Assembly (NCBI GenBank): GCA_000320545.1
Contig: ADNK01001125.1
Location: forward strand, 1 to 37,989
Length of the DNA stretch: 37,989 nt
DNA from: Bigelowiella natans CCMP2755
Taxonomy: Eukaryota; Protista; Cercozoa
Direction: 5' to 3'
Positions within the stretch are counted from its first letter, which is position 1, and the number at the start of each line of letters is the position of its first letter. The notes beneath the pieces were generated by a model. That model had not been told where the DNA came from. It saw only the letters and a list, made by a program, of their open reading frames with translations, and made no database searches. Below, piece after piece: positions 21,439 through 26,771 of the stretch. A program made the translations under genes and the position numbers.

Positions 21439-23287
21439 ATGAACACATTCACCGCTGGACTTCGAGGGTCGCAGCAGAAGAAGAACTCCGAGCTAGATAC
21501 GGATGAAAGGAATTTGAAGCGTGTTTATCAGGTGCGAAAATCTTGCGATAAATATGCTATGGAGAGAAGCAGGAATGATTCTGTTTACTCACGGATGCAT
21601 ACGCGTGCCTGCGTCGTGCCATCCATGGCCATAATTATACACATCAGGTGAATGTCGATGAAGGACTCGCCTTCGGCGAAAAGCTTATCGCGCTTGGGGA
21701 CAACCTTGAGGAACTGAATTCAAGTATCAACAACAGAATAAATTGTGAAAAGAGCACAGAAATTTGGATATGTGAAATAGCTAGTCCACACTATCGCTTC
21801 GACTCTCTTGTCTTTCAAAGGATACACCACAATTTTTGTGTTGAGTTGCTGAGCTGGTGAACATCCTAGGTATTGATGATGTCCTCATCAAAGACGACAG
21901 CAGCACGCCGAACAGCAGCACGCCGAGCACGAACACCGAGCGAAAACATAGGAGAAAGAGAGTTTCTTACAAGGAACAGGGGAACAAAGAGTACGAACAG
22001 AAAAATACACATCTTAAAATATATCATTATCATCGAAAGCTAATTAAAAGCACGATTCGTCTTGAAAATATGAGTCGCTTATCTAGTCATCTTTTTATGC
22101 TAAATAATGTATGGCTTGGGATGCATTGGGAAAATTTGTGCCAAAATGTGCGTTGATTTCTGTCGTGAAACGATTTATCTTTGCCGTCCTCATTTTGTTC
22201 GGTCTCTTCATCATAAGATATTACACCGAGAAGTCTCTGTCTCTGCGGCGGGAGCTATACAGAAGCAAATTGATAGAAGGCCAGGTCTGCATAATGAAAC
22301 TTACTCATCGATTTTATTCCCGCTCTCCATCCCTCAATTCTCTCGAGTATCTAATGATAAGAGGTCCCGAAAGCTTTACAAGCATCATGATTAGTATTGA
22401 TAATTAGTATTCCCCCACCAACATCACAGTTTTCATTTTTCTCTGCAGATATTTCGCTTCTGGAAAACGTACCGCAAAACAAAGGAGGGGGTCGTGGATA
22501 AGAAGTCGTACATGCACGCACATAAGCTCATCTCAAAGGTAATAAGTTACTCGGTTATCTCAAGCTGCTATTACTCTGTATGCATGTGTAGTAAAATGAC
22601 AGTTACTTCAAGATATTACATAGAGATCGTACGTTCGTTCACATGTTACAGGCTCTCGACCCGAGTTGGGTGTGCCACCAGGCGATTGTTACCGCGATTA
22701 AAGACTGGCAGCATGACTTAACGCGTGAATTCGACGAGATCGTCTGCGTGCCACTCTACCTTCTCGAGAGGGAAGGTGGCGAAGCAGGTAGTAAAGTGAA
22801 ATCACCACGGCGCGGCCGCCCCCTAGACTCTAGAGATGGGCAGAAAAGTGGGAGGAGGGGACGATCAAAGAGTCAGAACCGCGACGAAAGAAGCTTTGAA
22901 CGAAGCCGAAGTCCTGGAGCGACAGGTAGTAGCTCTGCTTTTGCAAAATCACCTCTATTACATCTCTGGGAAGCATTTTTGTTTTATCCATGGAAATGCA
23001 AATTATCGGTCCCCCTTTCCCTTTTCCTTCTTCTTCTCCTCGTTACAGCAAAGAGCCCTCGGAGTCGCTCACCTGCTGCGCGTAAGCAAGCAGGACGCAT
23101 CAGTCGGACCCGGACCACCTTTGCGACTAGGAAAGAGCAATACGATGTGCTCGATTATCGTAAACTGAAAATGTCCATCTTCGAGATCGCAGATACCTGG
23201 ACGGACGATATTGATGAACTAACGTAATGCAAGTAGCTTCACTCCATCTGCCACATAGTATACCATGACTTGGATGGGGTATGTGTA

Positions 23288-23329
<42 letters not shown>

Positions 23330-26120
23330 AGAGAGGGATGTTTTGCTTCCATCGCTCCTCGCGTCTAGTTATTTGTCGTCATCTTTTCTTTCTCCTTTTT
23401 ATCCCCTCTCCCCCCTCCTCTCCGTAATTCTTTTATCCTCTCACCACAAAGATACGCGGCCTTTCTCGCTCGGCTTCTCACGGCTATCTCGGAGCCGAAA
23501 AGTCACTGCTGGAAGCCTTTGGATAGCGTGAAGGCAGTTCACACCAAGGAGTTCCTTCGTCGTACAAGTCCAGAGGAACTTAGCAATTTGCACCTTCAGG
23601 CGCTGTCATATAAGGAGGCTCTAGCTCTTTCCAAGTCTTCGAAGCAACAATACCTCGAGGTCACGCGCGAGACGTGGGAGGGGAAAAGTGGCTACATCGC
23701 CACACATGTCATACCGATATTCAAGCGGCTCTACCACACTTTTGAGAAGGGAACGACAGCGACTTCTCCGGGGTCAATCAACGGCAACAAACTGAAGCTA
23801 ATCCATGGTATTACCAAGGGCGATAGAAAGCACCTCAATGACGTTATCCTTCCTGAATCTGGTGCAACGATGCTCCACCTCGCGTGCCAAATGGGTTATC
23901 TCGATGTTATAAACGCCCTATGTTTTCGCGGGGCAAACATAGACGCGCGCAACAGCGAGGGGGAGACCCCACTTTTCGTCTCTGTGCAGGCGCTCTGCCA
24001 AGAGTAAGTGGGAGAGGGGATGAAAAGGATAAGGATATCTTTTGTGAGATGGAGGAGGGAATAGATATCGAAAGAATGACTGTAAACTGGGGCAAAAAAT
24101 ATCGTAAAGACTGAAAAGAGCGGGAGTAGCACAAAGCCAACCATATTATGGGGTTCTGACCATAATTGTTATTGTTATTGTTATTTTTATTATTATTGTT
24201 CTCCTCCTCATCATCATTACTATCAGCTACATGCAAAATGACGGCTCAATCAGTGCTAAATTTCCGCGGCATGCCCCTGGCGAAGAGCCTCTCGTCGAAA
24301 TCATCGCTACCCTGGTCGACTTCGGGGCAAAGTCCAGCATACCGGACATCCACTGGGTATCTCCGATTAATTTAGTCCGAAATTTGAAGCAGAGAATGCA
24401 GCAGTCGGAGTCAACAGCGAGCCCGCTGAATCTACAGGTTTTGGAAAGTCTAGAGCTCCTCCTTGAGAACGCCGACGATGACAATGTACCGCACGGAGAC
24501 GGAGAGACGCATCAGACTATTTCCAGGGGAAAATCCAATGACGTAGAACTCGGTGAACAACGCAACCCTCGTCACCATCGTCATGCTAGAATTATCAACG
24601 AGATTAAGAGCGGCGGTGAAAACATCCGCGGCAAGCTCCGTCGCGCTTACGTCATTAACTCGCTCGGGCATGCCGCACCAGAGAATGACGGCGAGCAGCA
24701 AGTGCTACAGCGCGCGAAGATGCTATTCACAATTCAGAAGGGACACAAGGAGCACCGCAAGTCGCTGCGTCGAGCATCTCTCGTCGGCGGAATCGATTTA
24801 AAGAAAGAACATATCCACCCTTCGCTCCAACGATCACGCGTCCTCTACCAACTCAAAAAAGGCGAACCAATCAAGAAACTGCGCCGAACTTCCCGAGTGC
24901 TTCAAGGGGTGGAGGACATGAAATCAGCCACAGCTGTAGGCAAGCGAGGAAAAGGAGAAGGAGTTGGGGGAGGAGAAGGACGAGGAAGCGAGACACTGCA
25001 AAGAGCAAAGCTGTTATATGCAATCAAGCACTCAACGAACGAACGTTCCCGTTCGCCTCTTATCACCAGGGCCGCATCAAGCTTTGACTCGGACAGGGAG
25101 CGAGTGAACGATTCTCTCGAAAGAGCTAAGATGCTCTACGAAATTCAGAGTCGGAAGGATATGACGCACGCACTTCGCCGGGTGCCCACTGCTGAACATG
25201 GTGCCAGCAATATCGACGCTAAGACTCGCCTGCTTCAGGCAATCCGTGCTCGGAAGAGAATACAGCAGCAGCAGGAGGAGGAGGAGGAGAGTAAAGGATT
25301 AGTACCTTATGATGAGGAACCGGTGAGAGCGCATACGCCCGTCGACAAAAATGCTCGCAATAGTCATGGCCGCAGCACTGTCCCATCACTCCCAACGTTA
25401 CCGGCTCTGCCGATATCATCCGCATCACTATCTGTACGATCAGGGAGAAAATTGCCTTTAGTCTCCAGGTCGACGCATGTAAGATAATAAATAAGTTGTA
25501 GTAGTGGGTTACGAGCGTGGTATTTCTCCACGTCCCTTTCCATGCGACGAGCCATATTGCACATATTCTTCAACGTCTAATTTCGTTGTCACCCTCTTAT
25601 CTTAGCACAAGTATTAAATCTTGCAGATTCCGACATAGAATTCTTCCCCATTCATTCCTTACCCCTAGGTTGTCTACTTCCGATGGTCCGCGGACACCAC
25701 GAGAGGGAGGAGGTAGGTCCCATCGCAGCCCACGGTCTGAAAGAGTTTTGGCGCCAGGGAACCGTACTACCTCATCCCCCGTATCATCTCCCCTTCAGCA
25801 CGGGCAGCGGGAGGAGACAAAGGGCTCGGGAGTTATTAAATCGACGATCACTCGTAATGCAAAGACCGCTCGTGTCATCAGTATCAGTACACATCAAGAC
25901 GAGGAGACGCTCCACGTGAGACCTCGTACTGCCCAATCCTCGTTGCACATTTCAAGCAAGCAGTACGTGAAAAGTAACAAGAGGGACCATGGCTCTAGCG
26001 TCCGAAGATACGTCGATCCTCCGGGTAAGTGCCTTCCAAAGTTAATGAGCGTGTTTAGGGATCAAAATACAGAGCAATCCGTTATATGATTTTTATACGA
26101 ACTATGAACTGAAAAGAGAC

Positions 26121-26155
<35 letters not shown>

Positions 26156-26771
26156 ACACATATGCACACAAAGAAAGAGGGGAGTGAGCAGGAGGTAGGG
26201 TTGAGATGTAGTCGTTAGTACCTCATACTTTCTACCTTTAGGTCGCAAACAACTTCAAATGTCGAAACAAGCTCTTTCTGGCGTTATGGTCCCACCGAAG
26301 GAGGTTAGAAGAATGGTAAGCTACAACCACCACACGGACAGGCATCGTGGGAAAAGACGCTTCATGGACCATTTATCCGTTGGCATTCCAAAAGCAGCCA
26401 CGTCGCTGCGCAGAGCCTGTAGTGCGTCTCCTGGGACTTCAGTTCGACGGTTACGCTCAGCTTCAGCGACAAACCATCCTCTCAGAAGGAGCGGTTCACC
26501 GGTAGATCGTTTTGATGCATTTGCCATGACCACATACATTGTTTTCTCATTCATCTCAAGTCGTATTGTTGGTGATACTGCAGAATCCTCATCATCAGCA
26601 TCAGTCACCGCACCACATGGCCATGAAAAAGGGCAGGGAGTCCATTCCGGCATCACTCAATCTGTTCAAGTCAACTGGGAGAACTTTGCCACACAGATCT
26701 TCCGCGGGACAACATTCACCAGGTCATCCAGGGCAAAAGTAGATGTTGTGCAATGTCAAACTTCTCACTGA
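21439..26771 (+). CDS. Protein with an EF-hand-like pair, ankyrin repeats and tandem WH2-like repeats; multi-exon
   Basis: Phase-consistent exons: IFRFWKTYRKTKEGVVDKKSYMHAHKLISK|ALDPSW..AIKDWQHD and LDYRKLKMSIFEIADTWTDDIDELT|YAAFLARLLTAI (protist EF-hand-like pair); SGATMLHLACQMGYLDVINALCFRGANIDARNSEGETPLF and IIATLVDFGAKSSIPDIHWVSP (ankyrin); a large exon from ~24227 to ~25478 with repeats LqRak.L..I......LRR; a basic Ser/Arg-rich tail. Confidence 0.8.

Follow-up and report, generated by a model that had tools for sequence, protein, structure and literature searches.

Tandem-WH2 proteins are one of the few known routes by which actin filaments are started without Arp2/3 or formins, and to our knowledge nearly all known examples come from animals or bacterial effectors. 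Contig ADNK01001125.1 of Bigelowiella natans CCMP2755 (GenBank assembly GCA_000320545.1) raises the question of whether a protist has its own version, in which an array of WH2-like motifs is joined to ankyrin repeats in a single chain. We analyzed positions 1 to 37,989 of the forward strand of this contig (hereafter the window), in which nucleotides 21439-25487 (+) most likely form one lineage-specific, single-copy predicted gene of eight exons with a product of ~825 residues. The predicted protein most likely consists of a ~350-residue N-terminal region without a recognizable domain, two to three ankyrin repeats, and a basic, probably disordered tail, in which the motifs lie. We propose that this protein is a candidate tandem-WH2 actin regulator whose motifs are divergent members of the WH2 type, a reading to which we give a little under an even chance; the WH2 identity of the motifs, judged from their sequence, is plausible but unproven.

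All six related motifs that a first-pass annotation of this DNA had listed at ~24580-25260 are present in the translation of 24231-25484 (+), the 418-codon repeat exon, and span nucleotides 24576-25280 (R1 to R6, Table 1). Their kinship stood for four of them and was reduced to a resemblance of pattern for the other two. Leave-one-out profile hidden Markov models (HMMs) were scored against the six-frame translation of the window, where the best match elsewhere reached up to 9.9 bits, and R6 was undetected in this search. On the strength of these leave-one-out scores, R2 to R5 form one demonstrable family of repeats, and R1 and R6 resemble them in pattern only. A profile HMM of all six copies found no further site beyond R1 to R6 in the genome, searched as a 91.4-Mb assembly of 3,736 contigs, and the repeat exon itself is single-copy there. 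The motifs are spaced 33-57 residues apart. Core nucleotide identity between copies is 47-67%, and Tandem Repeats Finder reported no DNA-level repeat matching the motif units. Since the conserved residues mostly use different codons, the copies are old and maintained at the protein level.

Within the alignment of the six repeats, conservation is limited to a block of ~25 residues, and the spacers are unconserved and variable in length. A single-sequence AlphaFold2 prediction of the repeat exon (mean predicted local distance difference test score, pLDDT, 48.8) places short helices over the repeat cores and contains no folded domain. The repeat region is basic, with 53 K+R against 26 D+E in 241 residues. 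Given the confined conservation, the variable spacers, and the lack of a folded domain in the model, the region is predicted to have the layout of a short-linear-motif array.

What kind of motif does the array repeat? As defined by Kollmar et al. 2012 (PMC3298513), a WH2 motif has two large hydrophobic residues, two spacers, I or L, then K, R, or Q, a variable linker, and L-[KR]-[KR]-[VTA]. At the two spacers, a WH2 has small, polar, or acidic residues ([ASED]-[ASDEQ]), and the linker is 4-5 residues long in the majority of families, 7-8 residues in fungal WASP, and 10 in WASH (PMC3298513). Every one of the defining positions falls among the conserved columns of the repeat, which read R-x-x-[ML]-L-x-x-I-[KQ], linker, L-R-R-[ATV]. 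The helix part is present in all six copies (ML..IQ, VL..LK, LL..IK, ML..IQ, II..IK, and LL..IR), and the anchor in R1, R2, R3, and R5 (L-R-R-A, L-R-R-A, L-R-R-T, and L-R-R-V, after linkers of 9, 9, 7, and 8 residues); R4 and R6 have no anchor of the LKK[T/V] type. Linkers of 7-9 residues are within the published WH2 range. A relaxed WH2 regular expression matched these same four copies in the exon and nothing else in the six frames of the window, and when it was run on 20,000 composition-matched shuffles, 45 had at least one match and none had two or more.

The profile-profile comparison points in the same direction. When the alignment of the six repeats was compared by hhalign with an alignment of 12 canonical WH2s of the same genome, the probability was 76.5% (P 2.2e-5, score 22.8), in the register R-x-x-L-L-x-x-I-x-x-G; column-shuffled controls (n=600) had mean scores of 6.3-7.0 and a maximum of 15.7. 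On a gap-tolerant helix-plus-tail score derived from these 12 WH2s, R2 and R3 exceeded all 45,862 background windows, and on a helix score from the same source the helices of R2, R3, and R4 exceeded all 47,141 background windows. As for possible partners, at least four actin genes of full length are present in the genome, as is the Arp2/3 subunit ARPC2.

However, a number of results weigh against a WH2 identity. The P-values given above are post hoc and overstate the case, because the motif was picked for its WH2 look and the copies are not independent of one another. The Pfam WH2 model PF02205 matched neither the exon nor any single repeat at E up to 10, and a genome-wide scan with it found 11 canonical WH2s above the cut-off (23.1 bits) elsewhere, the repeat locus not being among them. 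With a HMMER profile of the native WH2s, the repeats reached at most 4.5 bits, below chance matches in the window. A profile of the repeats found no WH2 chain among the PDB sequences, a search in which, as a control, the native WH2 profile found N-WASP, Spire, WIP, WAVE1/2, MIM, Cobl, WASP, VopL, and INF2. The strict published WH2 pattern matches none of the copies, because the first spacer, a small, polar, or acidic position in WH2s, is Y or F in four of the six. Five further conserved positions of the repeat (L-Q at the start, A, K/R, and Y/F) are features that WH2s do not have. In this genome, each of the 12 matches from the Pfam WH2 scan comes after a poly-proline tract. The repeats do not, their region having 6 Pro in 241 residues and no poly-proline. 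Lastly, no orthologues were found that would show which repeat positions matter. The WH2-like array proposed in the first-pass annotation thus holds at the level of pattern and profile-profile comparison, and it fails with PF02205, with the native HMMER profile, and in the PDB search.

That all HMM-level WH2 tests are negative also speaks for another explanation, namely that a linear motif specific to this lineage, made of an amphipathic helix and a basic patch, is repeated here to recruit some partner that is not actin (a basophilic kinase, a phosphatase, or a scaffold client, for example), and that the likeness to WH2 is coincidental. We regard this as quite possible, if short of probable. 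The additional conserved residues (the leading L, the A, and the aromatic at position 6) make the helix hydrophobic over more than half of its circumference, unlike that of a typical WH2, and screening many windows by eye can turn up a pattern match at P ~1e-5 by chance. Two of the tails, L-R-R-A-S and L-R-R-T-S, are textbook R-R-x-S/T sites, and more R-R-x-S-like strings are found in the open reading frame (ORF) at 26205-26768. The R2 tail L-R-R-A-S-L (24765-24782) has the same six residues as Kemptide, the classic test substrate of protein kinase A. However, in four copies the residue after L-R-R is A, T, or V, while the phospho-acceptor position holds S or T in only two. What the tail conserves is L-R-R-[A/T/V] and not R-R-x-[S/T], and therefore an LKKT-type anchor fits it better than a kinase site. 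Moreover, the helix, the K/R/Q position, the linker length, and the L-R-R anchor coincide with the WH2 definition simultaneously, and a by-eye comparison produced no alternative known motif that fits in register. In that comparison, the IQ motif, the Sfi1 centrin-binding repeat, the SOCS BC-box, the APC/C D-box, PP1 RVxF, RPEL, the WASP C-helix, and the calmodulin 1-5-10 and 1-8-14 motifs were all out of register with the repeat.

If the repeats are WH2-type motifs, the end of the array deserves separate consideration. No LKK tail follows the R6 helix; what comes directly after it is a basic triplet, then a hydrophobic residue, and then an acidic run containing a single aromatic, so that the array could be read as the V part of a VCA-like activator of Arp2/3, with R1 to R5 delivering actin, R6 (a hydrophobic helix, then R-K-R-I) as the connector, and Q4-E5...P-Y-D-E-E as the acidic region. 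R6 and the acidic run loosely match the published descriptions of C and A (PMC3298513), and the genome encodes Arp2/3 as well as canonical V, C, and A pieces elsewhere. We nevertheless consider such an activator very improbable. R6 has only two of the three hydrophobics spaced i, i+4, i+8; the acidic run contains Y and no tryptophan and is not C-terminal, with 58 residues coming after it; there is no proline-rich region; and phmmer detected no homology to any WASP-family protein.

Most of the canonical WH2s of the genome are strikingly uniform, with a G-run followed by D-R-x-x-L-L-x-x-I-R-x-G-K-K-L-K-K, and all come after proline repeats of the G-I-P-P-P-P type. Their loci (L002-L013) include C345:7212-8225, C3186:10368-10427, and C3468:52193-52641, and two contigs hold two copies each. 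Some of these WH2s precede C-helix-like segments, and one precedes an acidic segment containing W.

For the proposed joining of ankyrin repeats to the array, the decisive junction is E7/E8. The exon chain in Table 1 was derived from the sequence, by a scan of donors and acceptors combined with codon-usage log-odds, and homology searches and fold predictions were run per exon. All predicted junctions from E1 to E8 are GT-AG and frame-consistent; the least certain is E3/E4, where the intron would span 487 nucleotides. Codon usage, a crude score for which E7 and E8 belonged to the training set, is positive for the coding frame of E1-E5, E7, and E8, where the other frames give negative or near-zero values; for E6 it is weak. 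For E8, itself in that set, it is +96.7 in frame and -30 and -67 in the other frames. The predicted ankyrin exon E7 joins the repeat exon E8 in frame through a GTAAGT...AG intron, a splice geometry that can be read directly from the DNA. AATAAA begins at the last base of the E8 stop codon. The surroundings are eukaryotic in character across the window, with GT-AG introns, CA/TG microsatellites, and a GC content of 39-54% per kb.

Table 1. Predicted exons, the intron between the ankyrin and repeat exons, and the repeat copies of the candidate gene (positions in the window).
Feature	Position	Strand	Description
Candidate exon 1 (E1)	21439..21531	+	ATG start; donor CAG/GTGCGA, phase 0; codon log-odds +5.9 in frame, -13.6/+1.8 in other frames
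Candidate exon 2 (E2)	21648..21723	+	AG acceptor 21646-47, GT donor 21724-25; codon score +11.5, other frames negative
Candidate exon 3 (E3)	21870..21961	+	Phase-0 donor at 21961 chosen to fit exon 4; codon score +9.0
Candidate exon 4 (E4)	22449..22538	+	Strong polypyrimidine acceptor ttttctctgcag, donor AAG/GTAATA; codon score +7.8
Candidate exon 5 (E5)	22652..22787	+	Same-phase alternative donor at 22925; frame open through 22788-23048
Candidate exon 6 (E6)	23049..23223	+	Basic Ser/Arg-rich, then helical segment; strong polypyrimidine acceptor 23047-48, donor AAC/GTAATG; phase matches exon 7
Exon 7 (E7)	23452..24003	+	Orphan helical region, ankyrin repeat 1 (~23846-23953), first helix of ankyrin repeat 2
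Intron E7/E8	24004..24226	+	223 nucleotides, GTAAGT...AG, phase 2+1; stop at 24005-24007 if retained
Exon 8 (E8)	24227..25487	+	Second helix of ankyrin repeat 2, then basic low-confidence region with repeat array; TAA 25485-87
R1	24576..24659	+	WH2-pattern motif: helix I-I-x-x-I-K, 9-residue linker, L-R-R-A; matches relaxed WH2 expression; leave-one-out 1.7 bits
R2	24696..24788	+	Core repeat, L-R-R-A-S tail; leave-one-out 24.3 bits, E 1.5e-6; two-block WH2 score 13.7
R3	24816..24908	+	Core repeat, L-R-R-T-S tail; leave-one-out 11.0 bits, E 0.02; two-block score 14.1
R4	24987..25079	+	Core repeat, helix only, degenerate tail without L-R-R; leave-one-out 11.4 bits, E 0.016; helix score 8.7
R5	25107..25199	+	Core repeat, L-R-R-V-P tail; leave-one-out 23.2 bits, E 3.6e-6; two-block score 5.0 (2e-4 of background windows); relaxed expression match
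R6	25209..25280	+	Helix L-L-Q-A-I-R-A, copy nearest canonical WH2 helices; no L-K-K tail, then Q4-E5 run; helix score 4.9 (8.5e-5 of background)

A skeptical view of this model would be that the locus is not a functional coding gene as drawn, being an unexpressed or decaying ORF or a set of exons from different transcripts. No homologue, paralogue, or recorded product was found for any of the non-ankyrin parts, the 5' junctions were selected for frame consistency, and the AlphaFold2 confidence is low. We nonetheless hold a non-functional locus to be improbable, as an open frame of 459 codons, such as the one containing E8, has a chance probability of ~1e-9, the in-frame codon usage described above is positive (with E7 and E8 in the training set), the repeats are conserved at the peptide level with divergent codons, and an ankyrin repeat appears to be split by a canonical 223-nucleotide intron with matching phases.

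The extent of the gene differs from that of the feature first described, which reached 26771. An extension from 25488 to 26771 is unsupported by the sequence: the codon score there is ~0, and the only donor near the stop (exon end 25478, phase 0) has no matching acceptor. We ended the gene at 25487 because the downstream ORFs score ~0 and no frame-compatible acceptor was found. Those ORFs, 25505-26086 (194 codons) and 26205-26768 (188 codons), both on the + strand, are rich in Ser, Arg, and Pro and contain several R-R-x-S-like strings. Farther upstream, the E5/E6 intron (22788-23048) has two same-phase donors (exon end 22787 or 22925), and its open frame encodes an Arg/Ser-rich stretch; alternative splicing or retention of this intron would keep the frame.

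The ankyrin repeats of the first-pass annotation are borne out. In E7, the Pfam family Ank matches with E 4e-8, Ank_2, Ank_4, and Ank_5 also match, and residues 132-180 match PDB ankyrin and DARPin chains, to E 7e-48. By eye, one ankyrin repeat appears to be split across the E7/E8 junction, with G-E-T-P-L-F... in E7 and the second helix and G-A-x-x-x-x-P-D turn in E8. The part of E7 before the ankyrin repeats has no homologue in the protein database and no paralogue in its own genome, and ORF 22595-23224, in the E5-E6 region, gave no match in Pfam, PDB sequences, or the protein database, nor a paralogue in its own genome.

The same annotation had also placed an EF-hand-like pair in the N-terminal region and suggested gating by Ca2+, and neither survived. 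At E up to 10, none of the exons or ORFs matched a Pfam EF-hand family, and the EF-hand loop pattern PROSITE PS00018 had no match on the + strand at 20700-27000. A looser Ca2+-loop pattern, run over the same span, had no match in the frames of the gene; its sole match is out of frame, in a stretch broken by a stop at 26435. The single-sequence AlphaFold2 model of the ankyrin exon, a possible site of a degenerate helix-loop-helix, had a pLDDT of 37.8, too poor for a fold search. Because no EF-hand was found by Pfam or by the loop-pattern scans, Ca2+ gating has no support in the predicted protein.

The claim that the architecture is an unrecognized one has held up within the reach of the searches made. 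With phmmer, the repeat exon had no homologue among 1.84 billion representative proteins; it had no match in a word-indexed protein search limited to proteins of 230-731 residues, and none in metagenome contigs. No recorded gene has exactly the repeat-exon product, and no paralogue of the protein was detected in its own genome; some of the collections searched may lack records of this genome. In the literature consulted, we found no paper combining 'tandem WH2', 'ankyrin repeats', and 'nucleator', and a wider search for WH2 together with ankyrin led to espin, whose WH2 is a single one.

Comparison with known actin-binding systems shows what is shared and what is not. With the WH2 family (PF02205; WASP, WAVE, WIP, and MIM), the repeats have in common the triad [VILM]-[LM]-x-x-[IL] with K/R/Q after it, a linker of variable length, L-[KR]-[KR]-[VTA], and a basic, probably disordered setting. 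In contrast to that family, they are missed by the Pfam and HMMER profiles, have an aromatic first spacer, conserve more of the N-terminal side of the helix (L-Q-R-A-K), have linkers of 7-9 instead of the usual 4-5 residues, and are not preceded by a poly-proline tract. With Spire, Cordon-bleu, VopL/VopF, and JMY, the protein shares at least three WH2-type motifs in a row on a predicted flexible chain, a few tens of residues apart. However, there is no sequence homology to Spire, Cobl, VopL, or JMY by Pfam or phmmer, and none of the KIND, Spir-box, and FYVE domains (Spire), the COBL domain, the VopL C-terminal dimerisation domain (VCD), or CA is present in this protein, in which Pfam finds ankyrin only.

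The combination of ankyrin repeats with a WH2-type motif is one that this protein has in common with espin. In espin, ~8 ankyrin repeats are accompanied by one WH2, by proline-rich segments, and by an actin-bundling module at the C-terminus, whereas the protein described here has two to three ankyrin repeats and an array of motifs. Since the repeat exon is without a match among the representative proteins, it has no detectable bundling module or homology of the espin kind. The large isoforms of espin are described as having N-terminal ankyrin repeats and a WH2-type actin-monomer-binding motif in one chain (PMC3953818). Another point of comparison is the SFM, a short helix in a disordered region that uses the same hydrophobic actin cleft, with anchors P1, P4, P8, and P9, binds filaments with the opposite polarity, and has no LKKT-type tail (PMC13364712). 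The repeats would resemble the SFM as short helices in a disordered region filling the same actin cleft, but they have the WH2 spacing P4, P5, P8 plus the tail.

Taking the repeats as divergent WH2-type motifs, we infer how the protein would bind actin, how many actins it would hold, and how it might nucleate filaments and be regulated. The short amphipathic helix R-A-K-[M/L]-L-[Y/F]-x-I-[K/Q] would occupy the cleft between actin subdomains 1 and 3, and the 7-9-residue linker and L-R-R-[A/T/V] anchor would run along the actin surface. The complete motifs (three to four: R1, R2, R3, and R5) would each bind one actin monomer at the barbed-face cleft and, together with the helix-only R4 and R6 on the same chain, would hold several actin monomers together. 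By analogy with Spire, Cobl, and VopL, the array would then nucleate, sequester, or sever actin. The ankyrin module would provide targeting, partner binding, or regulation. Phosphorylation at S554 of Las17, within its WH2, is an established case of lowered affinity for actin (PMC8102491). A phospho-switch that weakens actin binding could likewise be provided by the R-R-x-S/T sites that R2 and R3 carry in their tails.

A broader evolutionary proposal would be that a chlorarachniophyte-specific protein evolved its own WH2-like array independently of the poly-proline-linked WH2s and joined it to ankyrin repeats, giving Rhizaria a new class of actin nucleator or sequesterer built on tandem motifs, in which a WH2-type motif arose and multiplied de novo and may be phospho-switched at L-R-R-x-S/T. 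Taken as a whole, we regard this proposal as tentative and rather unlikely. As for the main reading, a confirmed tandem-WH2 protein from Rhizaria, with a new domain partner and with motifs that standard models miss, would widen the working definition of WH2 to include an aromatic spacer and a helix conserved over a greater length. Such a protein would also be relevant to the repeated origin of such motifs, an idea already put forward for other linear motifs that bind actin (PMC13364712). Should the repeats turn out not to bind actin, the gene would be of purely local interest, as one for an orphan ankyrin protein in which a linear motif is repeated.

Two other features of the window may be mentioned. 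Dinucleotide microsatellites (CA/TG, and also GA) lie at ~20190-20560 upstream of the gene, at 23281-23330 in the E6/E7 intron, and at 26125-26155 downstream of the stop. At the left end of the window, on the minus strand at 562-2590, two long ORFs contain PHD fingers (PF00628, E 8e-14) and the PHD-like zf-HC5HC2H (E 3e-11), and these ORFs are probably exons of one chromatin-reader gene.

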